A stretch of 64,000 bases of DNA, from the sequence record MZ443780.1, one strand, 5' to 3'. The notes under the pieces were generated by a model. The model saw nothing but the letters and a program-made list of their open reading frames with translations. It had not been told where the DNA came from and searched no databases. The number at the start of each line of letters is the position of its first letter. Position 1 is the first letter of the stretch. Both the position numbers and the translations under genes were made by a program. Shown piece by piece: positions 26,027 through 58,014 of the stretch.

Positions 26027-27790
26027 TTAGAACGCCTTACGCTCAACATTTGAATAAAGTGTATCGTAAGGTTCAGAGTACAGTTCAGGTCCTCGTTGTG
26101 CGCGAATCGTCACGTAACCTGTATGACGGTTAAACGCTGTGATTTCGACTGTAGGCTGTTTAGGCTTGATAGTCGCATAAATCGGAGCATTCAGTGTAGG
26201 CTCGTCTGTCTGAATCTTATTTACAGATTGCAGAGCAGCACCAGAAACAGTCGGCAAGTTGAAACGCAGTTCAGCACGTTTCTGACCGAACGCAGCGCGA
26301 ATCATACCACGCTCCATCTCTACGCCATTCTGTTTGAGGTATGCAGCAATGCGACGAGCAATACCGGTCAACTGGTCACGAGTACGAGGGTCGAATGTAC
26401 CTTCGAAACTGATTGCTTCCGGCGGCTGACGCACGGACAGATGCAGACCAGTGTTGAAGTAACCCTCAGTCAGAAGACGCAGCACTTCTTTTACGACTTC
26501 TTGCGTGTTTGGTTTGATTGCAGCGATGCGCAGCTCAGGCACATCTACTTTGACCGGGTCGCGCAGCTCAGTTTGGTTATCCATGTAACCGAGAGACACA
26601 TGCTTTGCGTTTGCATACGTGTGCTGCAATACGCCAGTAGCACGAATCAGAACAGAGCCGCCTTTAGCAATGTCGTAGAGTTCGTCGCTGGTGGTTGTGC
26701 TGAACAGGTAGTAGTCTGTAGGCACTGCCATGCGATTAACCGCTTCGACTGCTTTGGTCTGTACTTCTTTTACAGTTTTACCGAAGACTATACGACTACG
26801 GTTAGGCTGAGAAGCAGACACAGGGAAGAATGCGCCGTAAACAACTTCGACGTTCTTCTTGATAGGACGCTCAGATGGAACCTTAGTGCCACCAGACAGA
26901 GGAGGCAGCTTCACGCCCACCAGCTTGCCTTTGACGATAGCTTTGTTTTCTTTGAAAGGCTTGAGGCCGTCAATCACTTTCGCCAGATCAGCACCGCTAA
27001 GAATCTTCTCCAGCGGAACAGCGAGGTTCTGCGGCAAATAGTGTTTCTTGCGATACGAGTAGATTACGGTGTCTTTCTTGATCTGAATAGGCGTTGCCAT
27101 ATTGCGACCAATAACACCGACCGGCTGGAACGTGTTTGCTTTGTCGTCAGCGATTGTGCCATAAGCCTTCGTGAACTCAGTCTGGCCGATGATGTTCGCA
27201 GCACGTAAGTGACCACGAATGATAAACACAATCTTCGGTTCGTCTTTCAGGCGCAGCTCGTAGCGGTCACGGTTCAGGTAAACCATGCTGTACTTGTCGC
27301 CTTTCTCCAGTTCGAGATCGTACTCATCGTTAGCGTCATCGACAACGACTTTCTTACCCTGATACGTAGAGTAGGTGCGAGCGCCCGCAGACTCAGAAGC
27401 AATCTCCAGTGCCTTGCCTGTATTAGACAGCGCAACTGCGAAGTCCATAACGGCGGGCATCAGGTCGAATGAAGATGCTACTGCATACGGTTTGCGTTTC
27501 GGACCGAGCTGAACGTGTACTGCACTACTGCTGGACATGAACACGGTATTGCCTGTGTCCTCATGAGTACCAGCGAAGTGCATACCACTAATGCGCTCGA
27601 TGATGTTCGCGTTGAGTGAAGGGAATGCAATATCGCTACCGGCAGTGAAGTCATAAATTTCACCGTTGCGCCATGCGTATGCGACATTGTTCGAACTAAG
27701 ACCTACAAACGCATCACCCAGCTGGCGAATCGTCAGCGGCATAATGCTTAGGTCACGAATGACTCTGTGTTGCTTTTGAATGAGGTTCAT
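26027..27790 (-). CDS. Hypothetical, probably head-associated protein (587 aa) carrying the shared ~60-aa module
   Basis: Long ORF; SESA followed by TYQGKK...LEKGDKYSM...YELRLKDEPKIVF. Confidence 0.7.
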   Translation of the reverse strand: MNLIQKQHRVIRDLSIMPLTIRQLGDAFVGLSSNNVAYAWRNGEIYDFTAGSDIAFPSLNANIIERISGMHFAGTHEDTGNTVFMSSSSAVHVQLGPKRKPYAVASSFDLMPAVMDFAVALSNTGKALEIASESAGARTYSTYQGKKVVVDDANDEYDLELEKGDKYSMVYLNRDRYELRLKDEPKIVFIIRGHLRAANIIGQTEFTKAYGTIADDKANTFQPVGVIGRNMATPIQIKKDTVIYSYRKKHYLPQNLAVPLEKILSGADLAKVIDGLKPFKENKAIVKGKLVGVKLPPLSGGTKVPSERPIKKNVEVVYGAFFPVSASQPNRSRIVFGKTVKEVQTKAVEAVNRMAVPTDYYLFSTTTSDELYDIAKGGSVLIRATGVLQHTYANAKHVSLGYMDNQTELRDPVKVDVPELRIAAIKPNTQEVVKEVLRLLTEGYFNTGLHLSVRQPPEAISFEGTFDPRTRDQLTGIARRIAAYLKQNGVEMERGMIRAAFGQKRAELRFNLPTVSGAALQSVNKIQTDEPTLNAPIYATIKPKQPTVEITAFNRHTGYVTIRAQRGPELYSEPYDTLYSNVERKAF

Positions 27791-27798
27791 ATAAATCC

Positions 27799-28233
27799 CT
27801 AATACGAAACGAGGCGGAATGCGTTCTGCTTGAGCAGGTTGAGATTACCGAGCATCAGGCTATAAGCCATAGTGCCGTATTGCTCGATCAGACTATCAGG
27901 CACAATAGACCCGAAGTAAAGAGCTTTATCTGGTCGAGTGTTAATCTCTTCCCCTACGGACTTCGCCTCATTTGGTACGACGAAGCACCATGGTTCAGCA
28001 ACGTATTTACCCTTTACGTACTGAATCCTATAACCAACAGCGATGTGCTGGCCTTTGGTAGGACGGTACGAGAAAACATCCGTGTTCTGGTTGCGTGACT
28101 TGCGCACAGCAAACAATGCCATAGTGAGAAAGCGCTGTTCAAACTGCGGGATGAACGCGTTGTCTTCGCAAATCTTTTTCAGTACCGCCTCTTGTCGCGC
28201 TTTTGGTAGCGACGAGTAGAGGTTTAAGTTCAT
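27799..28233 (-). CDS. Hypothetical protein (144 aa)
   Basis: ORF in tandem, 4-nt overlap with tmk. Confidence 0.7.
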   Translation of the reverse strand: MNLNLYSSLPKARQEAVLKKICEDNAFIPQFEQRFLTMALFAVRKSRNQNTDVFSYRPTKGQHIAVGYRIQYVKGKYVAEPWCFVVPNEAKSVGEEINTRPDKALYFGSIVPDSLIEQYGTMAYSLMLGNLNLLKQNAFRLVSY

Positions 28234-28835: not shown

Positions 28836-28844
28836 AGTGATTCC

Positions 28845-29336
28845 TTAGGCGAATCGCCCACCTCGCCATGCGGCTTTGATGAGCAATTTTGCCACGATTT
28901 CGTTCTTCATTGTCTTTCGCTTGGCGTTGCTTTTGACAGATGCAGAGCCGAACTTATTCACGACAATCAGACCACAACCGAGTTCTTTAATTCGGGCTAT
29001 GATGCGTTCACCGTGCGATTCAAACAGGCGCTCGTCAATGATGAAGTACATGCGCATACAGAAAGGCAAATACTTATGCCACTTCTTATCGGTATTGAAG
29101 TCTGCCCAGCAACTCTTTACCTCAGTGATAATCATATCGCATTTGGTATTCAGGCAGAACACGTCAGCCCGTAAGTTACCGTGCTTAATCAGTCCGAGTT
29201 CGACGTGGCACGAATAGCGTTTGTCAATCCAGTAGCGTTGTGCAGCTTCGGTAAGAAAGGCCGTCTTATCAGGACGGCTCATTGACTTGAAAACGGCGGT
29301 TCGAACAGGTTCAGCTTTGCGCCTACTATAAGCCAT
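28845..29336 (-). CDS. MmcB-like PD-(D/E)xK nuclease-fold protein
   Basis: RADV...IITEVKSCWADFNTDKKWHKYLPFC matches the MmcB family pattern. Confidence 0.75.
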   Translation of the reverse strand: MAYSRRKAEPVRTAVFKSMSRPDKTAFLTEAAQRYWIDKRYSCHVELGLIKHGNLRADVFCLNTKCDMIITEVKSCWADFNTDKKWHKYLPFCMRMYFIIDERLFESHGERIIARIKELGCGLIVVNKFGSASVKSNAKRKTMKNEIVAKLLIKAAWRGGRFA

Positions 29337-29784
29337 ACGAGTCGATAATGTCCAGGGCTTGCTCTACGATAGGTCGAAGTTTCTTATCGACTTTGCGCAG
29401 TGCTTTATCCGCTTTGAACCACTTGCGTTCACGCGTCATGGCTTCGTCGTACTCGGTCAGTATAGTCTTGACCTTCATGACGTACCATTCAACGTGTTGC
29501 TCGCGGCCGGTCTTGCCTTTAACATACTTCATGATATCCACGAAGTCTTTCGGCTTACCGAGAACACCAGCTTCTTCCATAGCTTCTTTCAGCGCACTGT
29601 CAAGTGCAGTCATTCCCTTCTCAACGCCGCCTTTGGGTAGTCCCCAGTTTCCGGCGTGAGTTGTGCGAATCAGCAGAATCTCTACTGAACCGTCACGTTT
29701 CTTTCTGTATGGGATAACGCCTGACTGCTTGCGAGGTTTCTTCTCGCTAGGCAGCTTGGCGGACAATGACACTTTGATCATCAT
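29326..29784 (-). CDS. Nudix hydrolase
   Basis: Nudix box WGLPKGGVEKGMTALDSALKEAMEEAG; QSGVIPYR and ILLI resemble the Ap4A/diphosphoinositol-type subgroup. Confidence 0.9.
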   Translation of the reverse strand: MMIKVSLSAKLPSEKKPRKQSGVIPYRKKRDGSVEILLIRTTHAGNWGLPKGGVEKGMTALDSALKEAMEEAGVLGKPKDFVDIMKYVKGKTGREQHVEWYVMKVKTILTEYDEAMTRERKWFKADKALRKVDKKLRPIVEQALDIIDSYGL

Positions 29785-30284: not shown

Positions 30285-30313
30285 GGACGTCTCCTTATAC
30301 GATAGTCTCAGCT

Positions 30314-30321
30314 AAATTAGC
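30314..30321 (-). promoter_or_regulatory. Candidate late promoter motif GCTAATTT
   Basis: Directly after the stop at 30323, 30 nt before the start at 30284. Confidence 0.5.
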
Positions 30322-30322
30322 G

Positions 30323-31335: not shown

Positions 31336-31345
31336 GATGCGTCCT

Positions 31346-34026: not shown

Positions 34027-34028
34027 GA

Positions 34029-35553: not shown

Positions 35554-35565
35554 ACAAACTCCTTA

Positions 35566-39811: not shown

Positions 39812-39821
39812 TGTTCTTATC

Positions 39822-40334
39822 TCACATCATAGGACGGGAAACATCGAGAGCCATTTGAACAGACCACATTGCTCGGCCACCGGTACCGTTAAGCGTAATG
39901 CTTTGACCGCCGATTGGCCAGCAGTTGCGGAGCTGTTGTTCGCCAACCATTTGCCCTTGGTTGTCGTATAGCTCAATGATAATGTTTTTCTTGTACGCAG
40001 ACGGCAATCTAAAACCGCCAGTGTACGGGTTCTGAATCAAGTTCTGCCACGCAGTCATATACTTCATGACTGCGAGCTTCTGGTCAAGACCAAACAGTAA
40101 GCTGAAACCATCAACGCTCGAACCATGCGGCCAGTTGATTTGCACAGTGGCCACTTCTTTGGACTTTTGTTGATAGACAGAGAACGGCAGGTCTACCTCT
40201 TCACAGGCGAATGGGCTTAACGTGTAATTACCAATTACAGGAAACTCACGTACACGCCACTTGTCTTGCATGAAGGGATCGTCAAGGCCAGGTGCAGATG
40301 AATCATTCAGGTCGTCAAGCGTCGGCAGTGGCAT
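39822..40334 (-). CDS. Tail tube-like protein (second tube paralog)
   Basis: DPFMQDKW...AWQNLI...YKKNIIIELYDNQG...LRNCWP parallels 41063..41575. Confidence 0.75.
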   Translation of the reverse strand: MPLPTLDDLNDSSAPGLDDPFMQDKWRVREFPVIGNYTLSPFACEEVDLPFSVYQQKSKEVATVQINWPHGSSVDGFSLLFGLDQKLAVMKYMTAWQNLIQNPYTGGFRLPSAYKKNIIIELYDNQGQMVGEQQLRNCWPIGGQSITLNGTGGRAMWSVQMALDVSRPMM

Positions 40335-40336
40335 GA

Positions 40337-41011
40337 TTAGTCCTCTACAATAATAAGCACAGGTCTAACTGCATCATCGAACTTGAGGAACGTAGCGCCA
40401 ACCAAATAGCCGCCATTCTCTACCTGTTTGACAACAGCTTTCTCCAGCTCTGTCTCCCACTTGTCACGCTGGTTGGCTTTATAGCCTTCAAACGTTTCAG
40501 TCGCGTCATAGTAGTTATAGGTTCCACCAGTCGGCATAGGGATACGTGCGAGGAACTGCAATCGACCAGCGTTCTTAAACTTAGTCTTGTGCAGTGCTTG
40601 AGTCAGCTTAGTGTCTTCGGCTTTAGAGCCAGGGACAGCTTTGAAGATCTTCTTCGGTTGTGGTTCTTTCGGTGCGGCAGGAAGTTTCTCACGCGCTGGC
40701 GTATTCTTATCAGTCGCTTTCTTCACGCGTATGCCTGACACAGTGCCAGTAAACGGACGACTACGCCCGAGCAGCGAACGTGCAGTAGCAGCATCGACTT
40801 CAAACACTACTGACGGATCATCCTTATGCAGCACATAGAACTTATTGCGCTTCGCAGCCTTGATACCGAACACATCTTTTTCTTCGATATCGGCTTCGTG
40901 CTCTTTGTTCTCAATGCTAACTCTGCGCTTACCTTCGAAGCGATACCAGTCGCAATCTTGAATCGCAATGTCTGGTAGTTTACGTGCGCTTTCGCTCAGT
41001 AGAATAAGCAT
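40337..41011 (-). CDS. Hypothetical protein (224 aa) carrying the shared ~60-aa module
   Basis: MLILLSESA then WYRFEGK...EKDVFG...FYVLHKDDPSVVF. Confidence 0.7.
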   Translation of the reverse strand: MLILLSESARKLPDIAIQDCDWYRFEGKRRVSIENKEHEADIEEKDVFGIKAAKRNKFYVLHKDDPSVVFEVDAATARSLLGRSRPFTGTVSGIRVKKATDKNTPAREKLPAAPKEPQPKKIFKAVPGSKAEDTKLTQALHKTKFKNAGRLQFLARIPMPTGGTYNYYDATETFEGYKANQRDKWETELEKAVVKQVENGGYLVGATFLKFDDAVRPVLIIVED

Positions 41012-41020
41012 AGTGTCTCC

Positions 41021-41056
41021 AAAACGAAAAAGGGCCAGAACGAATCTTGGCCCTTG
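41021..41056 (-). terminator. Intrinsic terminator after the tail tube gene
   Basis: AGGGCCAA-GATTCGTT-CTGGCCCT-TTTTCGTTTT. Confidence 0.75.
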
Positions 41057-41062
41057 TGTTTC

Positions 41063-41575
41063 TTACGATGCGAGTTCGGCGTAGTCGAAGGACCATTCGA
41101 TTGATACCGGAACAGCCTGCGCAGCACCGGAGAACTGCAAGTCAGGAACCTGCTTAGGCCACACACCGTAGATGTTGTACTCTGCTACTACTGAACCGTC
41201 CATATCGAAGATACGGAAGATTGCTTTGGTCGCGTAGTCAGCTTTACGTGCGCCCAGCTGGGTTTGAGTAGCACGAACGAACTGGTGCCATTCTTCCAAC
41301 TGTTTGTACACAGCCATTTCAGAGTTTTCGTTATACTCGGTTGAGAGCGCGTGAGAGAAGATCTTACGACCAGCGTAGTTGAGCTGGTGGCCGAACGCTT
41401 CTTTCAGCACTTCTTCCAGAGTAGAGCCTGGCTTAACACCAGTCTTACAGAACAGGCGCAGAGTACGCGCATAGTCTGTACCGCCAACAGGCGGGTTAGG
41501 GATCAGGAACTCGAAGTTGTCATCGAGTAACGGATCTTTCGTAGACGAAAATTCGTCAAGAGTTACCTTAGGCAT
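41063..41575 (-). CDS. Tail tube protein (T4 gp19-like)
   Basis: Follows the sheath; DPLLDDNFEF, QLEEWH, IFDMDG...YNIYGVWP, SIEWSFD. Confidence 0.85.
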   Translation of the reverse strand: MPKVTLDEFSSTKDPLLDDNFEFLIPNPPVGGTDYARTLRLFCKTGVKPGSTLEEVLKEAFGHQLNYAGRKIFSHALSTEYNENSEMAVYKQLEEWHQFVRATQTQLGARKADYATKAIFRIFDMDGSVVAEYNIYGVWPKQVPDLQFSGAAQAVPVSIEWSFDYAELAS

Positions 41576-41585
41576 CTAAAGCTCC

Positions 41586-43271
41586 TTAGAGTGCGCCAGA
41601 CTGAATGAGTTGCAGCGCGTACTGGATATCGCCAACAGGCGGCACGATAGCAGTTACGTGAATGCGTTTGGTGTAGCGAGTAGGGTCAAGGAACACGTCG
41701 ATGATCAGATCGCCACGCGCTTCGTCTTCTGCGGTGTTGTTTGAATAGTTACAAACAACTTCATACCAGCGTAAACCACGACCGGTCTTAATCGGTTCGA
41801 GGATTGCTTCCATCGCAGACTTCTGGCGCTGTTTCAGAATGTCGTCGTTCGGTTCGAAGACAGCACTCAGGTTGTTAGCGCGAGCAGAAGCGTGAAGCAT
41901 TGCCAGCAGACGACGAATGCCGATATCCTGCAGCGGAGACTTCGTTGTGTAAGTGGTATCAGCACCCCACATGAAGATACCTTCGCCTTCGAAGATCGCA
42001 ATCGGGTTAATCTGGTTGTCTACCAGAATGTCGCGGTCGCCTTGTTTGAAGCGATAGCGCACATCAGTAGCGAAGTCCAGCTTACCACGATTCATACCGC
42101 CAGGTGCCAACCACGATGCTACTTGGTCAGCAGTCAACATGCAGTACGCCATGCACACAGACGCAGGGACATAGAAGTCACGCGCGTTGTCGTTATCACG
42201 GGTCTTAACGTCAGCGTTCGAAAGCGCAGACCAAGAACCGATGATAGAGAACTCTGCTTGCTGGTACGGCTTGTTGCCACGACGATACGCCACAGCGCTA
42301 TCACGCGCTTGCAGACTGACAGGCACACCGTGAGTAGCGATACAGTCCATGCGGCTTTCGGCCAGCGTATCAATCTTGTTCGCAATCACAGGATGCTCAA
42401 GGCCACCGGAACACAGAATGCCAGCCTGAACATCTTCCCAGTCACGATAGTTATCCCACGCGCTAAGAACAGCAGACAGACTCTGGTTAGCGATAGTCGC
42501 ATCAGAGTGGTCAACGTCAATCACAGCACCGTCGCTACCACCAGTGAACTGACCGTTCGGAGCAGTCGGGTTCGTTGGGTCAGCAGGGCCACCGCCGATG
42601 GAGTTAATGACCACATAGTTCGGGTCTTCCAGCAGCTTGTAGTGGTTCGCATTCAGCTTAACGCGAATGTACTTCGAGTTAACGTTGATAACGTCTTCAA
42701 TGAAGAACTGATTGCCCGCTTCGTCTTTGTAGTAGCGCGTTGTAACAGTGTGCGTTTCCAGCGGCGTGAGATAGCCGACTTGGTACACTTTGATCAGGGA
42801 CTTATAGCCCAGAGGATCTGTTACGTCAGGCTCGAACGTGATGTACAGGTTGTTCGCCGCTGCGTACTGAGACAGAGAGTAGATCAGGCAGATATCGCGA
42901 TCAGAGAAAGCGACTTGCTCTGGGTCTGTCAAGCCCGCATTGCCAACAGGACGGCAGGTAGCGAAGTTGTTATAAGTTGTGATAAACACACCTGCGAATT
43001 TCACAGAGAGAGCGACACGCGTGATGTTCAGCTTGGTTGCTTTCGTCATCAAAATCTTTGCGATCTGGACGTTGTTAGCATAAGGACCCGTTGCTGGACC
43101 AAAAAGCGCGTCAATCTCATCTTTAGAGGTAACAGTTGTGTTAACACCTACAGGTCCGCGAGGCATCGGCATAACCAGAGTACACATGCCAAACTGCACA
43201 AGTGACGCTTGGTTGCTGCGGTCATTCTCCTGCGAATAGACCCCCGGAGAGGGGTGATTAGGTTGTAACAT
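41586..43271 (-). CDS. Tail sheath protein
   Basis: PSPGVYSQEND N-terminus, FTGGSDG, WLAPGGMNRG, NQINPI, IGIRRLL...FEPND. Confidence 0.93.
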   Translation of the reverse strand: MLQPNHPSPGVYSQENDRSNQASLVQFGMCTLVMPMPRGPVGVNTTVTSKDEIDALFGPATGPYANNVQIAKILMTKATKLNITRVALSVKFAGVFITTYNNFATCRPVGNAGLTDPEQVAFSDRDICLIYSLSQYAAANNLYITFEPDVTDPLGYKSLIKVYQVGYLTPLETHTVTTRYYKDEAGNQFFIEDVINVNSKYIRVKLNANHYKLLEDPNYVVINSIGGGPADPTNPTAPNGQFTGGSDGAVIDVDHSDATIANQSLSAVLSAWDNYRDWEDVQAGILCSGGLEHPVIANKIDTLAESRMDCIATHGVPVSLQARDSAVAYRRGNKPYQQAEFSIIGSWSALSNADVKTRDNDNARDFYVPASVCMAYCMLTADQVASWLAPGGMNRGKLDFATDVRYRFKQGDRDILVDNQINPIAIFEGEGIFMWGADTTYTTKSPLQDIGIRRLLAMLHASARANNLSAVFEPNDDILKQRQKSAMEAILEPIKTGRGLRWYEVVCNYSNNTAEDEARGDLIIDVFLDPTRYTKRIHVTAIVPPVGDIQYALQLIQSGAL

Positions 43272-43313
43272 CGTGAATCTCCATAAGAATGGGCATCGTG
43301 TAACGACTGTATG

Positions 43314-43321
43314 AAATTAGC
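43314..43321 (-). promoter_or_regulatory. Candidate late promoter motif GCTAATTT
   Basis: Intergenic, 43 nt before the sheath start. Confidence 0.55.
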
Positions 43322-43327
43322 GAGAAC

Positions 43328-43672
43328 TCAATAGCAAACCAGATTAACTCGCTGATCCACGTCACTTACCAGAACTGATTGTGCCATTTGTCCAGTAAAG
43401 ACGAACTGCCCTTCAATGACCATCTGGCCACCAGCGAACTGGAGAATGATAGGCTCTGCGGTATCAATGTACAGCAGCCCTTTAATCTCAGGCACTTGAT
43501 AGCCTTTAGGTCCTACGACGATAGATTGCTGTTGAATCATACCATCCAGCGGAATACCAACGGCGGAGGATTGACGCGAGAGCACAGCATTCTGCCTGTC
43601 GCTTACTGAACGCACACGCGTATCAATGACTAACGTGCGGTCAAGTTTGCGGTACTTCTGACGAGTGTACAT
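43328..43672 (-). CDS. Hypothetical structural protein (114 aa)
   Basis: Tandem ORF between the tail completion-like gene and the sheath. Confidence 0.65.
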   Translation of the reverse strand: MYTRQKYRKLDRTLVIDTRVRSVSDRQNAVLSRQSSAVGIPLDGMIQQQSIVVGPKGYQVPEIKGLLYIDTAEPIILQFAGGQMVIEGQFVFTGQMAQSVLVSDVDQRVNLVCY

Positions 43673-44361
43673 TAATCTTCTTCCTCCTCATCGTCTGGCT
43701 CTACAGCAGCGGCTTTGGGCAAGTCCATGTCGATCTCAATGTCTTCGGTGATTTCACCGTAGTTGTTGATCTTAGCTTGCTCCAGATTGAAACCAATCTT
43801 GGTCTTAATCGTGATTGGAATCTCAAGCTCAAAGCTGCCGGGCGTACTACCGTCATCGAGGTCTTCGATATTAGGCAGCGGGATACTATCACCTTCAACC
43901 TGAACACGCACAGTCCATTCAGCAGTAGGCATGATGATTTTAAAACTAAGCAGCTCAGAGATTGAGGCAATCAGCAACTGTTGGGAGAACAGAAGCGCTT
44001 GGTCAACGTTCATGAACTTAACGAACAACGTACCAGAAAGCGTTACAGGGAAGTAATAGTTCGTCACGACAATAGCGTTCGTGTCGTGCTCACCAATAGC
44101 CCAGCCGCTGCCGTGACGCGATACGTTCTTAGGGTTACCGAGAAGCTCACGGTCGAATGCCATTGTAGGCAGTTTGAACCAACCGTACGGATAGTCAGTG
44201 CTGTAGTTGTTCGTAGCACGAATACCCTGCTTCGGGTTGTTATGCACAGACCAGACGAAACGCTTTAAGTTAAAGCCCTGTCTGAATTGTCGCTGGAAGC
44301 CAAAGATGGTTGCTTTCAACGACGTGCTATTCTTGAGCATACCAGCAAGGTTTGCACTCAT
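43672..44361 (-). CDS. Tail completion / terminator protein (T4 gp15-like)
   Basis: Track ORF 43672..44439; start revised to MSANL at 44361 (GGAG SD; upstream part is a terminator); YYFPVTLSGTL and FELEIPITIKT strands; position between capsid and sheath. Confidence 0.55.
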   Translation of the reverse strand: MSANLAGMLKNSTSLKATIFGFQRQFRQGFNLKRFVWSVHNNPKQGIRATNNYSTDYPYGWFKLPTMAFDRELLGNPKNVSRHGSGWAIGEHDTNAIVVTNYYFPVTLSGTLFVKFMNVDQALLFSQQLLIASISELLSFKIIMPTAEWTVRVQVEGDSIPLPNIEDLDDGSTPGSFELEIPITIKTKIGFNLEQAKINNYGEITEDIEIDMDLPKAAAVEPDDEEEED

Positions 44362-44379
44362 TTTAGGTGCTCCAGATAC

Positions 44380-44409
44380 AAAAAAGGGCAGCCTATTGGC
44401 CACCCTTTT
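44380..44409 (-). terminator. Intrinsic terminator after the capsid operon
   Basis: AAAAGGGTGGCC-AATA-GGCTGCCC-TTTTTT. Confidence 0.8.
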
Positions 44410-44428
44410 GGTTACCCGTAATCGGGTG

Positions 44429-44821
44429 TTAGTCGTCAAGTCGTAAGCGAATCAATGTTGAAGGGGCAGAGGATTCAGAATCAACTTCGTCCTCTTGCTC
44501 GTCTTCTAATTCGTCTTCAACTTCATCATCAGAGTTCAGGCTGATAACTTCGTCGTCGTGTAACGGCTCGGCTACTTCTTCCTCGGCGTTAAGCTCTAAA
44601 GCAGCAGACAGCGCGGCAACGGATTCGCCCATCCCAGAAGCGTTACTCACCGAGTTAACAAGGCACGAAGCCTCGAAGTTATCAGCGAGTTCGCATTCGA
44701 GGAAGTCCTCAGTGTCTGGTGCTACAGAAGCCTGCGCAAGCAAGCGAGCAGCATCAACCCACTGTCCTTCACGCGCTGCGATGATTGCCAGTGCAGCTAA
44801 GGAACCAGTCAAAGTCTTCAT
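44429..44821 (-). CDS. Acidic protein downstream of the major capsid gene
   Basis: 130 aa, Glu/Asp-rich C-terminus, S-V-S and S-E-S motifs; GAGGA SD. Confidence 0.7.
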   Translation of the reverse strand: MKTLTGSLAALAIIAAREGQWVDAARLLAQASVAPDTEDFLECELADNFEASCLVNSVSNASGMGESVAALSAALELNAEEEVAEPLHDDEVISLNSDDEVEDELEDEQEDEVDSESSAPSTLIRLRLDD

Positions 44822-44873
44822 GTTTGGTCCTCAGTTAAGAGGGCAACATTACGCTGCCCTCAATGCACGACAA

Positions 44874-45971
44874 TTATCCGCGTACTGCTTTCGCAACGGA
44901 ACGCACGTTCGCCAGAGTGAAGGAGAAGGTGCTTGACAGCAACCAGCCGCGGTCGGTGTTACCCATGTTCGCGCCGGAAGTCGGGGTAGACTGGGTACCG
45001 CCACGAGTGGTGTACACTGCGTGGTAGTCCTGGTCTGCCAGAACGTACAGCTCACCGTCGTGCAGCACACGGTGCTCTGGAGCGCGGAAGCCGTCAGTTA
45101 CCAGCTCCATACCCAGCAGAGTACCCAGACGGCCGGTAGTGATCAGGTCATACTTAGACACAGGGTCCAGAGCAGAGGTGAACTGATCGTTACCAACGAT
45201 ATCGTTCCAGTAGTCCTGCGCCATCACAGCGGTGCTAACAGGCAGCGGCCAGCTTGACACAGAATTTTTCAGAGTAGACAGCAGACGCGGAGTCAGGTCA
45301 CCGTGAACCCAGGTGATTGGGTTAGCGATACCAACTGCCTGGTCACAAGCAGTTTTCCACAGACGGTCTTCTGCAACCATGATAGATTGCAGGCCATCTT
45401 GCTGCGCGCGGTCCAGCAGGTCGCCGTTGATCTGATCCAGATCCATTTTGCTAACACGGATGTTGGATTTCAGTTCGAACTCAGCAGGCGTGTAAACACG
45501 ACCGCGGAATTGACGGTAACCGTAGTCGGTAGGACCGGTTGCGATGATAGCTTCTGCCTGGTGGATTTTCAGTTCGATACGAGCGATATCGCCTTGACGA
45601 ACGGTAGCACCTTTACAGACCTTGCGCAGCAGGCCGGCACGTTCAGCACGGTCTTCGATAGATGCAACGATAGATGCACCCAGAGAAGCCCACTTCTGGC
45701 CGCTGCCGTCAGCGATAGCTTCCTGGAACAGTTCGATCTTCTCAGCTTCGGACAGGCCGTTGTCGCTAGAGACAGAGTGAACCAGTTCACCAGTTTGGAA
45801 GCTGTTCATCAGCTTGCTGATTTGTCCCAGCAGGTCTTTTTGGCTTGATGCGTTAATCTCACCAGTAGATGAGGACAACGCCAGCTCGCCTTTACCGCCG
45901 AAACGCAGGTCTTCGATAGGGGCGCCAGAACGCAGGGTTACTTTCGCGCCGCGCATTACAGAATTGTTCAT
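44874..45971 (-). CDS. Major capsid protein (HK97 fold)
   Basis: 365 aa after scaffold and decoration-like genes; VAEDRLW, TGRLGTLLGMELVTD; AGGAG SD. Confidence 0.8.
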   Translation of the reverse strand: MNNSVMRGAKVTLRSGAPIEDLRFGGKGELALSSSTGEINASSQKDLLGQISKLMNSFQTGELVHSVSSDNGLSEAEKIELFQEAIADGSGQKWASLGASIVASIEDRAERAGLLRKVCKGATVRQGDIARIELKIHQAEAIIATGPTDYGYRQFRGRVYTPAEFELKSNIRVSKMDLDQINGDLLDRAQQDGLQSIMVAEDRLWKTACDQAVGIANPITWVHGDLTPRLLSTLKNSVSSWPLPVSTAVMAQDYWNDIVGNDQFTSALDPVSKYDLITTGRLGTLLGMELVTDGFRAPEHRVLHDGELYVLADQDYHAVYTTRGGTQSTPTSGANMGNTDRGWLLSSTFSFTLANVRSVAKAVRG

Positions 45972-46030
45972 TAGTTGCTCCTGAGAATAATCTCGTAAGT
46001 TTCAGTTCAAACAGTTACGGTGCGCGACGA

Positions 46031-46738
46031 TTAAGCGCCGTAAGAGGAAGACATTTCGACGATCAGGTAACCACGTTCAGTGGTAGGCGCCTGCTTGATA
46101 ACGCAGCCTTTCAGCACGGTACCGTTACCGCCGATGGTCAGCAGACCGTTCGGGCCGAGGGTTGGGTGGATAACGTTGTCAGCAGACCAGTCAGCAGTCG
46201 GGTCAAACATAGAGGTAGCGATGTTACCCAGTTTGATGTAACCACAACGACCCTGAACGTTAGAAGCCAGGCCACCGATAGGAGCATCAGCAGTGTAAGA
46301 ACGCGCTTCGGTCACAGACAGTTCGTAAGCATACTGGATGCGAACTTTCTTGCCTTCGTCGTCAGCGTGGAAGTACAGGTCAGCACCCTGAACACCGACT
46401 TTACCTTCTGCGGTAGGAGTCGCGCTGGCTTCCTGATCAGCTTTAGCGCCGTCAATTTTAACCAGCAGTGCACCAGCGTCTGGAACGCGAGTTGCAGTGA
46501 ACTTACGAGTCGCGTCGATAGTGAACTCTTCAACGCGGTTCATGTGCGAAGGCGGCATGGAGCGAGCCAGTGCGAAACCAGCAAACACTTCGTTAGCAGC
46601 GCCGGTAGACAGACGCAGGAAGGAGTGACCGCCTTCACGAGCCCATACCAGTGCAACACCTTCTTCGTGGATTACTTCGCCCGGCAGCAGGTCAGCTTCC
46701 TGGGTCTGTACGATATCGGTAGCATTTTGAAACAACAT
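46031..46738 (-). CDS. Head decoration / cement-like protein
   Basis: Between scaffold and capsid genes; EEGVALV...FAGFA...GYIKLG...VIKQAPT pattern; start revised to MLFQN (GGAGA SD). Confidence 0.6.
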   Translation of the reverse strand: MLFQNATDIVQTQEADLLPGEVIHEEGVALVWAREGGHSFLRLSTGAANEVFAGFALARSMPPSHMNRVEEFTIDATRKFTATRVPDAGALLVKIDGAKADQEASATPTAEGKVGVQGADLYFHADDEGKKVRIQYAYELSVTEARSYTADAPIGGLASNVQGRCGYIKLGNIATSMFDPTADWSADNVIHPTLGPNGLLTIGGNGTVLKGCVIKQAPTTERGYLIVEMSSSYGA

Positions 46739-46793
46739 AATCAGTTTCTCCAATGAGAGAGATATGTGAGAGACAAACCTTCACAGGCTGCAA

Positions 46794-48833
46794 TTACTTG
46801 CAGCGCAGGCGAGCGAGTTTATCTTCGAACGATGAGTCAGTGGAAGCTGAACTCTGGGATTCAACGGTTTCTTCTTCCTGAGACAGGAGCTGTGCAGCAG
46901 ACGGCTGTGCTTTAGGAGCAACAGCAGGAGCTTGCTGAACAACGTTGGCACGAGCAGCGGTAACAGTACCGGCAGCCGCGTCGATAGACTCAGAAATTTC
47001 GTTCTGTGCCACTTCGGACTTGGACATCAAGTCGTTAGCTTTGGACAGAGCGACAGTAAGGAAGTCCTTACCGTGAGCGATGAACGCTTGCTCAATCAGA
47101 GCGCGTGGGTCTTTGATACCTGCCGCAGTGAGCGAGCGGGACAGAGAATCCACGATTGGGTTGCTTGCATCGCCCCAGAAGTTTTTGGTGATACCCAACT
47201 GAGCAGCAGACAGAGCAGCAACGAAACGTTCGCTGTGTGCAGCAGTCGCTTCTTCGATAGTTGCTGTGACGTTCGCAGTAGCTTCGCTAATACGAGTGTC
47301 AGATTCTGCCACCAGCAGTTTATCTACCGGCATTTCGATCTGATACGGCATAAAGCCGAATGCTTCACAAGTGCCGGTCACGCCTGTCTGATTCAGAGAG
47401 TGTGATACTGCACGGATGAAATTATCAGATTCGAAACTTTTCGCTGCGTTTTCTTCGCCAACAGCACCAGATACAGAGGCGAACGTTGCGCGAGCGATTG
47501 GCTGGCCATCGTAGTACATGTGTACTGCGGCGACTTTACCAGTTGAACGGCTCAGGCTGACCAGTGAAGGGTCGAGCGTACCGTGCTGCGCCTGTGCAGT
47601 AGACAGGCTATTGAAGACGCGATTAACGACCTTGCTCTCAGAGTCAAACTCGTCTTCTTCGTCGTCGAGATCCAGGTCATCTTCTTCCAGATCGTCTTCG
47701 TCGTCGAGGTCTTCGTCGTCATCGGAGCTAGACTCGGAATCGAAGTCATCTTCTTCAAGATCATCTTCTTCCAAGTCTTCGTCGTCGAGGTCGTCTTCTT
47801 CAAGATCGTCCTCTTCGTCTTCCTCGTCGTCAGAGCTGGATTCAGAGTCAAACTCATCATCTTCCAGATCTTCCATGTCTTCGTCGTCGAGGTCGTCTTC
47901 GTCCAGATCTTCGTCGTCGAGGTCTTCCTCGTCGTCGATATCATCGTCTTCGTCATCGTTAGATGATTCAGAATCGAAGTCGTCATCTTCCTCGTCGTCG
48001 TCCATATCTTCGAGGTCGTCTTCTTCAACGATATCAATATCGCTATCGTCGCCAGACGTTGACGCTTCTACTGGTTCGTCAACCAGCGCAGCAGAGCAAT
48101 GTGCGCAGAACACAGGCTCTTCGTCGGAGCTTACAGTGAACGGCTGGTCGCATTTAGCGGAGCAGCTATACATGTGAGCTTCAACTTCACCGTTAGTCGC
48201 GGCAGAAGACAGCGCGGTAACAGCTTCAGGAGATTCCTGAGGTTCGCAGCTATCAACAGCCTGGCCGGTGTACGGGTCGAAGTTTGCAGCAACAGCAGCA
48301 TTAAAGCTACCAGTGCTAGACACGGCGGTAAACGCGTGTGCGTTGCTCAGTGCCTGTGCGAAGTTGCGTTGAGCTTCTTCGGCGGTAGCGCCTGTAGCAA
48401 CCAGACCAGCGTGTTCAACTTGCTCGTCCGCAGCAGCGGATTCAGCCAGGAACTGAGTAACACGCTCGTCGGTGATTTCAGACAGGTCAGCAGAGCACGA
48501 TGGGCAGCAGCCCTGTACCAGAGCAGAGCTATCAGAGATAACGTGGCTACCACAACCATCAAGACAGATGGTGTAATGAGCTTTCACATCACCAGCAGAA
48601 GACTGCGACTGGACTTCGGCGCGCTCAACCAAATCAGGATGCTCTTCCAGCAGCTCATTGCCGCCTTTCGGATTGTAGAGGTCAGCGCCACTCTGCGAAG
48701 CAAAGCCTACACCGTCAGAGGACCCGAAAATCATCAGGTTCTGTCCGAGTGCAGTACGGCGAAAGTTCTCTACTGCCTGATTATGGTTTTTACCGACACA
48801 CAGGATACCCGCGAGTTGGGTAATCTTTGGCAT
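46794..48833 (-). CDS. Prohead scaffold / core protein with CxxC motifs and a long acidic tract
   Basis: Start probably MPKIT at 48833; CLDGC, CPSC, CSAKC, CAHC; about 120-residue Asp/Glu tract; Ala-rich helical C-terminus; upstream of the capsid gene. Confidence 0.7.
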   Translation of the reverse strand: MPKITQLAGILCVGKNHNQAVENFRRTALGQNLMIFGSSDGVGFASQSGADLYNPKGGNELLEEHPDLVERAEVQSQSSAGDVKAHYTICLDGCGSHVISDSSALVQGCCPSCSADLSEITDERVTQFLAESAAADEQVEHAGLVATGATAEEAQRNFAQALSNAHAFTAVSSTGSFNAAVAANFDPYTGQAVDSCEPQESPEAVTALSSAATNGEVEAHMYSCSAKCDQPFTVSSDEEPVFCAHCSAALVDEPVEASTSGDDSDIDIVEEDDLEDMDDDEEDDDFDSESSNDDEDDDIDDEEDLDDEDLDEDDLDDEDMEDLEDDEFDSESSSDDEEDEEDDLEEDDLDDEDLEEDDLEEDDFDSESSSDDDEDLDDEDDLEEDDLDLDDEEDEFDSESKVVNRVFNSLSTAQAQHGTLDPSLVSLSRSTGKVAAVHMYYDGQPIARATFASVSGAVGEENAAKSFESDNFIRAVSHSLNQTGVTGTCEAFGFMPYQIEMPVDKLLVAESDTRISEATANVTATIEEATAAHSERFVAALSAAQLGITKNFWGDASNPIVDSLSRSLTAAGIKDPRALIEQAFIAHGKDFLTVALSKANDLMSKSEVAQNEISESIDAAAGTVTAARANVVQQAPAVAPKAQPSAAQLLSQEEETVESQSSASTDSSFEDKLARLRCK
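47640..48010 (-). repeat. Coding low-complexity repeat: four acidic units each ending F-D-S-E-S
   Basis: DDDFDSESSN, DDEFDSESSS, DDFDSESSS, DEFDSESK separated by (DEDL/EEDDL)n. Confidence 0.85.
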
Positions 48834-48911
48834 GGTTAAAACCCTCATAGAATTTATAGTCGTTGAATCGACAGGTTAAAATTAAGATATGCAGAAAAAA
48901 TCAAGGAATTT

Positions 48912-50054
48912 TTAAATTTTTCTGCTATCAATGTCAGCTTGTGGAATATAGCGATTTTCGAAGTATTTCGAGACAACTTCTACGCCATTTAAGGTGTATA
49001 CGTTGCGTAAACTATATCCCCAAACCATCAGTTCTGCGAGCGTTGCGAAGTGCTCCGTAGGGACCGTTTTAATGGTACGTGCGGTCAGAGAATCTGGGTG
49101 GATTTTCTTGCCGCGAATGGCCTGATCGAACTTCATACGGTCTACGTTACGCAGCATCGTATCGTCCACAAAGTGGGCTAATTCGTGCGTAATAACGTGT
49201 GCCATACTCAGGCTATTATACCCACCAAGCAACTGTACTAACTGCGCTGGATGGATTGAAATCGCACCATACAGGAAGCCATGCACACGGTACGTAGCGA
49301 TATGACTACCACCACTATCCGAGTTAGCTTTCAGAACGCCAACATACAGACGGTCGAAGGGCAGTGCAATGTTCAGGCCAACGCCGGGCATCACGTTTTC
49401 CTGAATGTCTTTGAGCACATAATCAGGAGGACTGACGCCATTCTTTTCGAACGATATCCCCGGCACACGCAGCTCATCCATACCTTTAACTTCAAGGTGG
49501 ACTCTACCACATTTCTTAACAGGCTTGACAGCGTAGTTATTTGGTGTGCCGCCTGGGTAAACAGCAGAGGCATAACGCAGCGCTTTCATGTTGCCGAAAT
49601 CGACTTCACCTAAACGCTGAACCTGACGTGCTTTCATGCTGTCAGTTGTATCGTCATCACCTGCAACAGGCATTGGTGGGAGTTTATCGAGGGGTACGTT
49701 GACTTTCGAAGGAGGCAGAGGTTCTGGCGCAGGCTTCTTGACAACGGTAGGCTTAGCCTTTGGTTTAGACGCTTTCTTTTCTTCTTCGTAAGGCGTGAAG
49801 TTGAAGTCAGGCTTAAACAGCGCGTCAGGCTTCGCAGTGAATGGCCGGCTGGTGGTAGCAATCATGTCACCATCAACGCCACTGATCGCAGCAGCACGAT
49901 CATATTTAGGGTGAGCTATGTAGTACAGGTCGCTATTGACTTGAAGCAGACCCACGACCTCACGCGGCTGCATACGAATGCCGTTTGAGATCATGGTGTC
50001 GTTACCCAGATAGCGATAGTACGAATAGTCTAAGATAGATAGACCTTCCGCCAT
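48912..50054 (-). CDS. Putative zincin metallopeptidase with N-terminal shared module
   Basis: VITHELAHFVD (HExxH) and downstream EHFATLAE; Pro/Lys linker; N-terminal YYRYLG...REVVGL...YYIAHP module. Confidence 0.7.
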   Translation of the reverse strand: MAEGLSILDYSYYRYLGNDTMISNGIRMQPREVVGLLQVNSDLYYIAHPKYDRAAAISGVDGDMIATTSRPFTAKPDALFKPDFNFTPYEEEKKASKPKAKPTVVKKPAPEPLPPSKVNVPLDKLPPMPVAGDDDTTDSMKARQVQRLGEVDFGNMKALRYASAVYPGGTPNNYAVKPVKKCGRVHLEVKGMDELRVPGISFEKNGVSPPDYVLKDIQENVMPGVGLNIALPFDRLYVGVLKANSDSGGSHIATYRVHGFLYGAISIHPAQLVQLLGGYNSLSMAHVITHELAHFVDDTMLRNVDRMKFDQAIRGKKIHPDSLTARTIKTVPTEHFATLAELMVWGYSLRNVYTLNGVEVVSKYFENRYIPQADIDSRKI

Positions 50055-50055
50055 A

Positions 50056-50835
50056 TTACGCCATCCTTAACAGGTGCTCTTTGTAGGTTGCGGCACATGC
50101 GAATGCCGGGTCGTCTACGCTACTGCACTCAAAGCCTGTCAGGAGTTTGCAGTCACGATAGACCAGACGCCCTGTACGTGCATCGAGATACGTAGGCTTG
50201 TTGAACGCTGTATGCGAACAGAAGTTACGCGCACGAGGTGTTACCAACTGACCACAGATACTGCATTTATATGCACGGTAGGTTGTGCCTTTGCTGTACG
50301 TGTTCAGTTCACCGCTCATGATTCGGTCGCAGCGCTCTTTGCAGCGTGTACGGTCGAATGCAAGCAGCAACGTCAGACGTGCGTGGTCGCCACGGAAGTT
50401 CTTGAGCTTCGACAGGTTAGAGTCAAAGATCATGCCCATAGCTTGACGGTAGTCTTTGTTGTTGTGCTCGATGAACGTCGGCTTACCGATGAACGTCTGA
50501 TACGCAAGGCGTCCTTGGTCAGGGTTGAACGTCAACCATTCTTGCAGACTAAACGCATCACCGTTCGTGTTCGGAAGTTCTGTGATGTTCACAGGAACAG
50601 GCACGATGATATAGTCGCGGATATCGCGTGACGTGTTGTACTGCTCGGCAGCTTTAGGCAACCACACGTTCACGTCGAGGTTAAAAGAGCCAGTCTGAAT
50701 ACCGAAACGCGAAGCATCCACACGAATAGACTTAGCTGTTTTGCTAACGTCTTCCTTGTGAAGGTCAATCGCGTTCAGTCCGACTAAGCCCATGTCCGAG
50801 GTATCAAACGACTCGGAACGAATGGACTGATCCAT
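50056..50835 (-). CDS. Prohead (capsid maturation) protease, HK97/assemblin-like with a Zn-finger insertion
   Basis: Start probably MDQSIR at 50835; PNTNGDAF, IEHNN (His), TYSKG (Ser), CSICG...FCSH, FECSSVDDPAF. Confidence 0.75.
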   Translation of the reverse strand: MDQSIRSESFDTSDMGLVGLNAIDLHKEDVSKTAKSIRVDASRFGIQTGSFNLDVNVWLPKAAEQYNTSRDIRDYIIVPVPVNITELPNTNGDAFSLQEWLTFNPDQGRLAYQTFIGKPTFIEHNNKDYRQAMGMIFDSNLSKLKNFRGDHARLTLLLAFDRTRCKERCDRIMSGELNTYSKGTTYRAYKCSICGQLVTPRARNFCSHTAFNKPTYLDARTGRLVYRDCKLLTGFECSSVDDPAFACAATYKEHLLRMA

Positions 50836-50845
50836 CGTGTTCTCC

Positions 50846-51256: not shown

Positions 51257-51257
51257 G

Positions 51258-53244: not shown

Positions 53245-53260
53245 ACATGCCTCATTTGGG

Positions 53261-56127: not shown

Positions 56128-56166
56128 GATTTTCTCCGATCGTCATTAACACTGGTATTTACAGCA

Positions 56167-58014
56167 TTAAGAGGCGATTGGGTCCTTGTTAACAGGGAAG
56201 TCTTCGGTCATGTCGAGCACACGATTGAACAGCTTCGGTGCCATGTCCTTGACGTGTTCTGCGTAGTCAAACAGGTTCTGCTTACGCGCACGGTTCACAC
56301 GCACCTGACGAACTTCATCTGGGCTGTTCGTGATATCGTACACTGTGTAGATAACGATGTTATCTGAGGCAGAGTGCGTACTGACCTTCAATACTACCCA
56401 GTCGCGTTTGAGTTTCGCATCTGCTCTGAATTGCAGCACGTCACCTTCTTCTGCTTCCTCGGCGCGATGCTGAGGAGTAGACTTGTTAGCGGCAGCAATC
56501 TTCTTCGCAGTCTCACGCGCTTCCTTCTCGGCAGCAGCAACGTCAGAGTCGGTATCTTCTTCGGCAGAGGTTTCATCTACCGCATCGGCGGCATCAGCAT
56601 CCTCGTCCTCTGAGTCGCCATCTTCACCTTCATCGTCAGTTGTTCCGTCGTCAGACTCGGCATCATCCACAGATCCATCGTCTTCGGAATCGTCTTCCCC
56701 ATCTTCTGCATCATCAGCACCTGTATCGCTATCGTCAGTGTCTTCTTCTGCATCTGGGTCTTCCTCTTCTTCGGGATCGACTTCTTCTTCGCCGTCAGTA
56801 TCTTCCTCTTCAGGTTGAGGTGCAGGCTTCTTGCCTTTAGCGCGAACTTTAGGTGGCGGAGCGTCTTCTTCGTCGTCATCAGGCTCGTCAATGTCTGACA
56901 GGTCGAGTGCAGGTTCTTCATGGTCAGCAGAGTCATCGCCACCAAACAGAGAGCCTACAGAATCTTCGATGTTAAACACATCGCCTGAGAACGGACTACG
57001 TGCGAGAATGTCTTCCAGCTTCTGCTCGTCGAGGTCAAGATCGATTTCGACTTCTTCGATTGCGTCGTCCAGAATTTCTTCTTCAATGACACGCATACGC
57101 TTGCCACGTCTGTCCGTATTGTCCTCATAGACAGTACGCACTTCGGCTTTAGGAGCTTCAATTTCACCGCTACGCACTTTCGAGCGCAGGTCTTTCATCT
57201 CGGCAGCACGTTCCTGAGCTTTCTTACGCGCTTCTTTCTGGAGTTCTTTGCGTTGTTGCTTCTGCTCCAGAACCTTAGCGTTGTTAGCGAGGCGTTGAGC
57301 TTCTTCCTCTTCTGCCTGACTGCGACGACGAGCACGGCGTACTAACTTGCGATAGTTTTTGAGCGTGTCAACATCGACAGTACCTTTCGGCCAATCATTG
57401 AAAGGCAGGATGTTTGTATCATGCACAATCAGATCGTACTGCGCGTCATCAACTTTCAGGAACAGACCGTCAGTGTTAATGACAACACCGCCTTTACCTG
57501 GGCGTAAGAAACGAACACCAATCATGTCGTTCTTGTAGAGCTTCGTCATACCCTTTGAAGTCTTCACTGGGTATTCAGAGCTTGCCACCATGCGCCACTG
57601 GTAGTTATCGAAGTCAACACCGTATACGGCTTCTGACTTGACTTTACGCGGTGAGAATCTCGCAGCATCGAACTGCACACGGTTCAGTTGTCGCTGCATC
57701 GTTTGAGCACCGGCAACCTTTGTGCGCTTACCATCACGATTAACGACGTCAGGTACTTTACGCAGCTTCGATGCACGTTCCATCAAGAATAGTCCAGTAG
57801 ACTTATCAAGAGGGAAGTCAACATGTGGCATATCAGGGAAAATCAGAGTGTAGCGTCCGCCATTACGCAGCGGGAGAATACCGAAGATATCTCCGTCACG
57901 AATCATGCGCTTATGAGTTCGTTGGGATACTTCTTTTCCGCGTGAGCCTGTGTACTTCATCCACGCGTACTTCGATACGGCATCTTGATATGATGCGGAT
58001 ACGGAAAGTATCAT
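56167..58014 (-). CDS. Hypothetical protein with two copies of the shared module, a coiled coil and a long acidic tract
   Basis: Start probably MILSVSA at 58014; WMKYTG...DGDIFG and WRMVAS...NDMIGV; Asp/Glu-rich about 150 aa. Confidence 0.7.
   Translation of the reverse strand: MILSVSASYQDAVSKYAWMKYTGSRGKEVSQRTHKRMIRDGDIFGILPLRNGGRYTLIFPDMPHVDFPLDKSTGLFLMERASKLRKVPDVVNRDGKRTKVAGAQTMQRQLNRVQFDAARFSPRKVKSEAVYGVDFDNYQWRMVASSEYPVKTSKGMTKLYKNDMIGVRFLRPGKGGVVINTDGLFLKVDDAQYDLIVHDTNILPFNDWPKGTVDVDTLKNYRKLVRRARRRSQAEEEEAQRLANNAKVLEQKQQRKELQKEARKKAQERAAEMKDLRSKVRSGEIEAPKAEVRTVYEDNTDRRGKRMRVIEEEILDDAIEEVEIDLDLDEQKLEDILARSPFSGDVFNIEDSVGSLFGGDDSADHEEPALDLSDIDEPDDDEEDAPPPKVRAKGKKPAPQPEEEDTDGEEEVDPEEEEDPDAEEDTDDSDTGADDAEDGEDDSEDDGSVDDAESDDGTTDDEGEDGDSEDEDADAADAVDETSAEEDTDSDVAAAEKEARETAKKIAAANKSTPQHRAEEAEEGDVLQFRADAKLKRDWVVLKVSTHSASDNIVIYTVYDITNSPDEVRQVRVNRARKQNLFDYAEHVKDMAPKLFNRVLDMTEDFPVNKDPIAS

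Follow-up and report, generated by a model that had tools for sequence, protein, structure and literature searches.

In phage T4, the internal proteins (IPI-III and Alt) carry a capsid targeting sequence of ∼10-19 residues, which ends in [LI]-x-E and is removed by the gp21 protease; the prohead proteases of both T4 and phiKZ cut after Glu. Packaged or, in the term of Aravind's laboratory, polyvalent anti-defence proteins, such as T4 IPI* and P1 DarA/DarB, comprise diverse effectors, zincins included, that are thought to travel with the DNA and to be the first to act in the host. The subject of this report is KMPT-N, a small domain that occurs, together with a short S-x-S-A motif, in proteins encoded in a window of 64,000 nucleotides from sequence record MZ443780.1 (the window being the whole stretch of DNA that was analysed). 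Judged from sequence, KMPT-N may mark proteins that are loaded into the phage head.

The window belongs to a jumbo phage: over bases 40000-50000 it shares 100% identity with Erwinia phage pEa_SNUABM_40 and 99.9% with pEa_SNUABM_3, jumbo myoviruses of ∼266 kb each, the latter of the genus Alexandravirus. Four of its genes are of concern here, namely 26027..27790 (587 amino acids, aa), 40337..41011 (224 aa), 56167..58014 (615 aa) and 48912..50054 (380 aa, a peptidase). All four open reading frames (ORFs) match the Pfam family PF20294 (KMPT-N, "KTSC and Metallopeptidase N-terminal fusion domain") above its gathering cut-off of 28.9 bits. The whole-protein scores are 70 bits for the 587-aa protein, 74 for the 224-aa protein, 63 for the 615-aa protein and 93 for the peptidase, where the match (E-value 1.5e-26) is made of two stretches of ∼50 bits each. 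A sequence-only reading of this DNA had called the module undescribed, which is wrong: PF20294 is a curated family, and UniProt already uses its name for the orthologues. As for what the domain does, our literature search found no published function and no paper in which the name itself appears, and neither a function, a fold nor a census of partners was found attached to the name of the PF20294 entry. A survey of jumbo phages (Iyer et al., PMC7824862) mentions no more than the partners, namely KTSC and SprT-like peptidases that might act on host proteins.

The copies themselves can be counted with some precision. In a six-frame scan of the nearest complete genome, PF20294 matches above the cut-off are confined to the four ORFs, and a hidden Markov model (HMM) built from the copies and their orthologues, run on the genome, returned the same four proteins and nothing else. 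The five copies on which the sequence-only reading was based are indeed homologous, four proteins passing the Pfam cut-off and the diverged repeat being joined to them by hhalign. This repeat, described at first as a degenerate second copy in 56167..58014, matches the profile of the first domain (hhalign 97.4%, E 1.5e-11, 73 columns) and still reaches 96.1% (E 3.3e-9) against a profile made from the other protein families only; it is detected neither by Pfam nor by our HMM. In 33 diverged members of the 615-aa type the second copy conserves NYQWRK ... GDxFGxRF ... GG ... YDxL ... LP, and the region is also kept in PaBG_00217 of phage PaBG. The C-terminal end of the 615-aa protein was considered as a third copy resembling KMPT-N and rejected (hhalign ∼1%). 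Outside the module, BLAST shows no kinship among the four proteins, as had been claimed. The motif strings that first drew attention to the module stand as written in three proteins (YSTYQG/GDKYS/YELRLKDEPKIVF; WYRFEG/KDVFG/FYVLHKDDPSVVF; WMKYTG/GDIFG/YTLIFPDMPHVDF), whereas the peptidase copy fits them only in part (YYRYLG/REVVG/YYIAHPKYD). In total, this phage has five certain copies of the module in four proteins and one doubtful stretch.

How widely is the domain distributed, and with what is it combined? A profile of 11 copies was searched against 1.84 billion representatives at E <= 1e-3. The search yielded 107 proteins, and removal of two spurious repeat proteins left 105 cluster representatives, in 102 of which Pfam also detects KMPT-N. 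Clustered by BLAST with KMPT-N masked, they fall into the 615-aa type (34 representatives), the 224-aa type (24), a group built of an N-terminal domain, KMPT-N and a C-terminal domain (9), an SprT-like group (7), the 587-aa type (5) and the 380-aa zincin type (3), with the other 23 in small groups or alone. The N-terminal domain/KMPT-N/C-terminal domain group contains Tad6 (PF25188) in seven of its nine members, with E-values down to 4.7e-62; experiments have shown that Tad6, a phage protein that binds ThsB, inhibits type I Thoeris (PMC13728456). Further partners are SAP and KTSC: PaBG_00107 consists of KMPT-N and KTSC (E 8e-9), and PaBG_00089 of KMPT-N and an SprT-like peptidase. The contigs of ten representatives that were looked up measure from 4 to 247 kb, and ocean samples are among them. 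KMPT-N is confined to a single jumbo-phage clade, made of the "Lupandier" group (Evseev et al.: Lu11, PaBG, NCTB, the Dickeya JA and AD1 phages, Erwinia Y3, Yoloswag and Alexandra; PMC7412058) and its metagenomic relatives. A tblastn search of phage records with two of the copies found nothing beyond the same clade, a word-based protein search with the 224-aa protein as query returned orthologues only, and a search of the ESM Atlas gave no usable match.

Within this family, [ILV]-S-x-S-A and KMPT-N are one unit. An S-x-S-[ASGTV] motif stands just upstream of the domain in 73 of 104 representatives, compared with 3.8% of random 29-residue windows, and in 52 of these 73 it lies within the first 12 residues of the protein (M-L-I-S-L-S-A type). 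The residue that follows S-x-S is Ala in 63 of the 73, while 46 have I, L or V directly ahead of the first Ser and 49 have L, E or I at x; most of the representatives that lack the motif have variants with A for S. In the window, the S-x-S-A that had been pointed out ahead of the module in three proteins can be read in each of them (Table 1), and Ser6, Ser8 and Ala9 rank with the best-conserved positions of the 224-aa family. KMPT-N is mostly an N-terminal domain, and in ∼20 representatives the S-x-S-A/KMPT-N unit is internal. The motif is retained at these internal units, both in the 587-aa type and in the Tad6 fusions, and LEIASESA, its internal version in the 587-aa protein, lines up with MELAIASD, with which PaBG_00089 begins.

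The motif is also found elsewhere in the phage. At least eight unrelated ORFs, most of them without a known family and one of them the NUDIX hydrolase of the window, begin with MEI[QYF]VSLS or near variants of it, and the proteome contains 69 instances of the broader pattern hydrophobic-x-S-x-S-[SAG], where shuffling predicts 23.5. Its strongest accumulation concerns an acidic protein of 684 aa, with nine occurrences against 0.46 expected, three DDxFDSESS repeats among them; from these motifs and from the position of its gene, the protein has the appearance of a scaffold or core component that undergoes multiple cuts. In the major capsid protein, LVHS-V-S-S occupies residues 63-69, at 19% of the length, where a maturation cut would be expected. 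Both Ser of this LVHS-x-S-[SAG] are invariant in the relatives from Alexandra, Y3, Yoloswag, SNUABM_5 and JA11, while x is variable and the flank, with its indels, is linker-like. The capsid protein of PaBG sheds ∼20% at maturation (PMC7412058), and the capsid motif of the present phage is a candidate maturation cleavage site with a specificity other than Glu. The prohead protease itself begins with MDQSIRSESF, from a start that is conserved in 14 relatives. Across the clade, Lu11 and PaBG have no S-x-S at the capsid position and no clean S-x-S-A before KMPT-N, and NCTB is intermediate. Such co-variation of the capsid and KMPT-N motifs, seen in few lineages, is the outcome that a shared protease site would be expected to produce. 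PaBG shows no enrichment of the motif in its proteome (44 observed against 34 expected) and no leaders of the MEIxVSLS type.

Structure prediction gives an idea of the domain. In an AlphaFold2 (AF2) model of the 380-aa protein, built with 15 orthologues, residues 1-90 have a pLDDT (predicted local distance difference test) of ∼80-89, and KMPT-N is modelled as six short strands followed by a helix and then a strand. An exhaustive VIA search with residues 8-74 gave the SH3 domain of OSF (Z 5.1, root-mean-square deviation, rmsd, 2.2 Å over 60 residues) and, as other SH3-type barrels, SH3b (Z 4.8), the TraI translocation-signal domain (4l0j; Z 4.2) and FeoA (Z 4.0); overall, the SH3-type matches span Z 4-5.1 and rmsd 2.2-3.6 Å over 55-75 residues. 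Foldseek returned nothing below E 0.08 from the PDB, with a list filled by SH3 domains at TM (template modelling) scores of 0.5-0.6, normalised to target length, and one member of the KMPT-N family has a weak Pfam match to SH3_2. For residues 1-240 of the 615-aa protein, AF2 gave a model (pLDDT 42) from which only the order of secondary structure can be used. By this modelling KMPT-N appears to be a small beta-barrel of the SH3-like type that carries a C-terminal helix, ∼65-70 residues long, with weak scores and one well-modelled copy behind the assignment. Its cores are basic, with a median isoelectric point (pI) of 9.7 and quartiles of 9.0-10.1 (n=108); two cores among this phage's own copies are not, at pI 5.8 and 6.9.

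What could such a unit be for? The sequence-only reading suggested targeting to, or docking in, the capsid lumen as a way to load diverse cargo. The explanation we favour, tentatively and at somewhat less than an even chance, is that S-x-S is a site of the prohead protease, that KMPT-N proteins are present in the prohead, where the barrel docks the cargo, and that they are ejected with the genome. In this scheme, S-x-S would be recognized or cut by the maturation protease, and the proteins that bear it would enter the prohead ahead of DNA packing; their presence there follows from taking S-x-S as a site of that protease. The basic KMPT-N barrel would serve as an adaptor that ties the cargo to the acidic core or scaffold and afterwards to the DNA, and the cargo would then leave the capsid along with the genome. 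This cargo would include the zincin and SprT-like peptidases, Tad6-type immune inhibitors, the DNA-binding domains KTSC and SAP, and the acidic 615-aa protein, and where the unit is internal, a cut at S-x-S-A would release the N-terminal domain. Indirect support for head loading comes from the mostly N-terminal location of the domain, the conserved [ILV]-S-x-S-A, the same motif in the capsid, scaffold-position and protease proteins, and a cargo that resembles effectors. That S-x-S-A and KMPT-N make up a modular head-loading cassette, cut by the protease at S-x-S and delivering cargo such as Tad6 and the zincins by co-injection, is a more demanding proposal, and we consider it doubtful.

Several points weigh against head loading. 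A shallow survey of PaBG identified 14 Coomassie-stained virion bands, and none of them is one of its three homologues (PMC7412058). Cleavage at S-x-S would be a new specificity because Glu occupies x in just 14 of the 73 motifs; for the same reason, the T4-type [LI]-x-E rule was rejected as an explanation of the motif. Moreover, the motif is also present on unrelated proteins without KMPT-N, and therefore the tag, not the domain, may be the address; KMPT-N may then play no part in addressing. It is equally conceivable that the motif forms a structural strand of KMPT-N, and NCTB has clean S-x-S-A tags, yet its capsid protein has no clean S-x-S. Finally, the fold matches are weak (Z no higher than ∼5, no Foldseek E below 0.08) and a single copy is confidently modelled.

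The basic charge and the small SH3-like barrel also suit another explanation, which we regard as unlikely: KMPT-N would bind or tether enzymes active in the infected cell to nucleic acid, probably DNA, without any role in packaging, and the S-x-S leader, if an address at all, would work independently of it. The partners linked to DNA fit here as well, namely the SprT-like peptidases, SAP and KTSC, the last of which has been termed DNA-binding by Aravind's group (PMC9503650), and so does the fact that the genes adjoin those for DNA ligase, dTMP kinase and an MmcB-like protein, both here and in PaBG. However, it is not apparent why the Tad6 fusions or the highly acidic 615-aa protein should bind DNA, the two non-basic cores of this phage do not conform, and the tight coupling of the domain to S-x-S-A, which extends to the internal units, is left unexplained.

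A further proposal, less likely again, is that the unit recruits substrates to the zincins of the phage, with a putative pairing of KMPT-N domains bringing the S-x-S-A sites of other KMPT-N proteins to the peptidase (48912..50054 or, in relatives, an SprT-like enzyme) for a polyprotein-like trimming or separation of domains. It is attractive that the unit is found at the N-terminus of the zincins themselves, in two unrelated families, that one such peptidase coexists with several non-peptidase KMPT-N proteins in seven of the seven genomes examined (this phage, PaBG, NCTB, JA11, Yoloswag, SNUABM_5 and Lu11), and that the internal S-x-S-A motifs are placed exactly at domain borders. By motif and by modelled fold, the product of 48912..50054 is a zincin metallopeptidase: it has a HELAH motif, and its residues 184-353 match minimal zincins (selecase, acel_2062, YbeY, LTA4H and Wss1/SPRTN, with Z 4.2-6.2 in VIA). 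The catalytic half, including the C-terminal 80 residues, is poorly modelled by AF2, and a sequence search of the PDB with the profile of the peptidase gave nothing significant. Against such recruitment, the third zinc ligand would be Asp, not His, in this phage, and the enrichment of S-x-S extends to capsid and scaffold-position proteins with no KMPT-N domain, a pattern that points to the prohead protease.

The ligand in question is possibly residue 298. Encoded at 49161-49163 on the minus strand, four residues after HELAH, it is Asp here (HELAHFVDD) and His in at least 90% of the orthologues.

Least probable of all is that KMPT-N is an SH3-like adaptor to a host component (a proline-rich or other peptide, the envelope or the nucleoid) that localizes effectors in the host: the SH3-like fold with its conserved aromatics (W-Y-x-Y-x-G, G-D-x-F-G) and the effector-like partners, among them the Tad6 immune inhibitor family (PMC13728456), would agree with it, but the domain is kept across Erwinia, Dickeya and Pseudomonas phages and marine and cyanobacterial samples (PMC7412058), hosts so different that a phage-internal partner fits better, and the coupled S-x-S-A is again unexplained.

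Each of the four proteins adds its own details, and the coordinates are collected in Table 1. The peptidase is where the doubtful stretch resides. Its N-terminal copy is seen by Pfam at residues 10-66 and matches the profile of the other families in hhalign (97.4%, E 1.5e-11). The second stretch, residues 212-275, which is absent from the sequence-only reading, also has ∼50 bits in Pfam, and this recurs in Yoloswag, pEa_SNUABM_5 and JA11, whereas our own profiles give it a probability below 2%. In the AF2 model it forms a helix and three strands immediately ahead of the HELAH helix, and because of this placement it would be part of the catalytic domain. The stretch and the N-terminal copy do have in common a VG-x-L-x-x-NSD hairpin and, in the model, a strand-strand-strand-helix order.

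Table 1. Location of the KMPT-N copies, the S-x-S motifs and related features in the window
Feature	Position	Strand	Basis or remark
587-aa protein: N-terminal domain (1-127), S-x-S-A, KMPT-N, 370-aa C-terminal domain	26027..27790	-	phrog_32352
KMPT-N, internal copy, residues 140-201 of the 587-aa protein	27188..27373	-	PF20294 E 2e-19, 70 bits; also our HMM
S-E-S-A, residues 132-135, just upstream of the internal KMPT-N	27386..27397	-	aligns with N-terminus MELAIASD of the PaBG homologue
224-aa KMPT-N protein between tail-tube paralogues	40337..41011	-	phrog_36535
KMPT-N, residues 20-84 of the 224-aa protein	40760..40954	-	PF20294 E 1e-20
S-E-S-A, residues 6-9, N-terminus MLILLSESA	40985..40996	-	S6, S8 and A9 (near-)invariant in 33 family members
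S-V-S-S, residues 66-69 of the major capsid protein (44874..45971), candidate maturation cleavage site	45765..45776	-	conservation of Ser
684-aa acidic protein, candidate scaffold/core	46794..48848	-	nine hydrophobic-x-S-x-S-[SAG] motifs; gene position
HELAH zinc-binding motif, residues 290-294 of the peptidase	49173..49187	-	invariant in 15 orthologues
Further stretch of the peptidase matched by PF20294, residues 212-275, of uncertain homology	49230..49421	-	Pfam ∼50 bits
KMPT-N, residues 8-74, N-terminus of the 380-aa zincin peptidase	49833..50033	-	Pfam ∼50 bits; hhalign 97.4%; AF2
Prohead (head maturation) protease	50056..50835	-	phrog_18299, E 5e-126
Diverged KMPT-N copy 2, residues ∼132-205 of the 615-aa protein	57400..57621	-	hhalign 97.4%, E 1.5e-11
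First KMPT-N copy of the 615-aa protein, residues 16-80 counted from its ATG at 58014	57775..57969	-	PF20294 E 3.4e-17
S-V-S-A, residues 4-7, N-terminus MILSVSAS, 615-aa protein	57994..58005	-	orthologues begin at the same ATG

The C-terminal domain of the 587-aa protein is homologous to that of the Tad6-KMPT-N fusions (hhalign 95%, E 3.9e-8, 130 columns). One such fusion, on a metagenomic contig (L067:2945-4678), lies behind MmcB-like and dTMP-kinase genes, as does the 587-aa gene here. The equivalent slot in PaBG holds the SprT-like KMPT-N protein PaBG_00089, whose BLAST similarity to the 587-aa protein is restricted to the KMPT-N unit; the slot after the MmcB-like and dTMP-kinase genes appears to swap its effector domain between phages. 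Two identities were tried and rejected for the 587-aa protein. Its N-terminal domain is not Tad6, with no PF25188 match even at E 10 and an hhalign value of 15% between the N-terminal domains, and the protein is not an SprT-like peptidase (PF10263) either, as it has no HExxH and no such Pfam match. Similarly, the C-terminal domain of the 224-aa protein has no Pfam match, and KTSC was rejected for it (no match at E 1), though the PaBG counterpart is KTSC. The 615-aa protein, which starts at the ATG used by all its orthologues, has a pI of 4.5. Its residues ∼290-500 (∼56500-57150, minus strand) are ∼200 residues of nearly only Asp and Glu, behind a helical stretch rich in Lys, Arg and Glu; this might mimic DNA or serve as a charge partner.

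Nearly every gene of the region is carried by the minus strand, and the KMPT-N genes are located in late structural operons, with gaps of 1-2 nucleotides (nt) to the protease gene and to a tail-tube gene. The 380-aa peptidase gene begins 1 nt past the prohead protease gene and is followed by the genes for the 684-aa acidic protein, a virion structural protein and the major capsid protein. The 684-aa protein, between the peptidase/prohead protease and the capsid genes, belongs to phrog_20988, which is labelled "ATPase". The 224-aa gene is flanked by two tail-tube paralogues (phrog_45) behind the sheath gene (phrog_23), and the 615-aa gene adjoins that of an NAD-dependent DNA ligase. The 587-aa gene comes after NUDIX, MmcB-like and dTMP-kinase genes. 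The NUDIX hydrolase (29326-29784, minus strand) starts with MMIKVSLSAK, a leader of the same type as those described above. Downstream of the 587-aa gene, positions 24751-26026 comprise ∼1.2 kb without a long ORF on the minus strand and mostly without an annotated coding sequence.

The existence of KMPT-N was already catalogued; what is added here is the coupled motif, the effector-like partners and the confined distribution. If head loading is true, it would provide a sequence rule to spot injected anti-defence proteins and effectors in this jumbo-phage clade, and foreign proteins could be packed into capsids by fusion to the cassette. If DNA binding or the recruitment of substrates to a peptidase is true instead, KMPT-N would be an ordinary accessory domain.

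Against the Pfam family, the comparison is direct: the peptidase of this phage and the SprT-like and KTSC proteins of PaBG have the architectures that gave PF20294 its name, whereas the other three proteins of the window have other partners. The PF20294 model misses the second repeat of the 615-aa protein, and the upstream S-x-S-A is outside it. The modelled N-terminal copy resembles eukaryotic SH3, bacterial SH3b, FeoA, the C-terminal domain of DtxR and the TraI domain 4l0j in topology (∼60-67 aligned residues, rmsd 2.2-3.6 Å, Z 4-5). Unlike these barrels, KMPT-N has an extra C-terminal helix and strand, and with no sequence similarity the scores support a common arrangement only.

The capsid targeting of T4 is similar in that an N-terminal element is found on unrelated proteins of a large myovirus, that the cargo is effector-like and includes an anti-defence domain, and that there is a prohead core protease of the gp21 type, so annotated in phage Y3. 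It differs in its layout. The element here consists of an S-x-S-A leader of 6-8 residues plus a folded domain of ∼65 residues, which would remain attached to the cargo; its motif follows [ILV]-S-x-S-A, not [LI]-x-E, and the unit can also be internal. The packaged and polyvalent proteins, for their part, are either single small proteins or giant multidomain ones, whereas in this phage one small domain is spread over several proteins of medium size.

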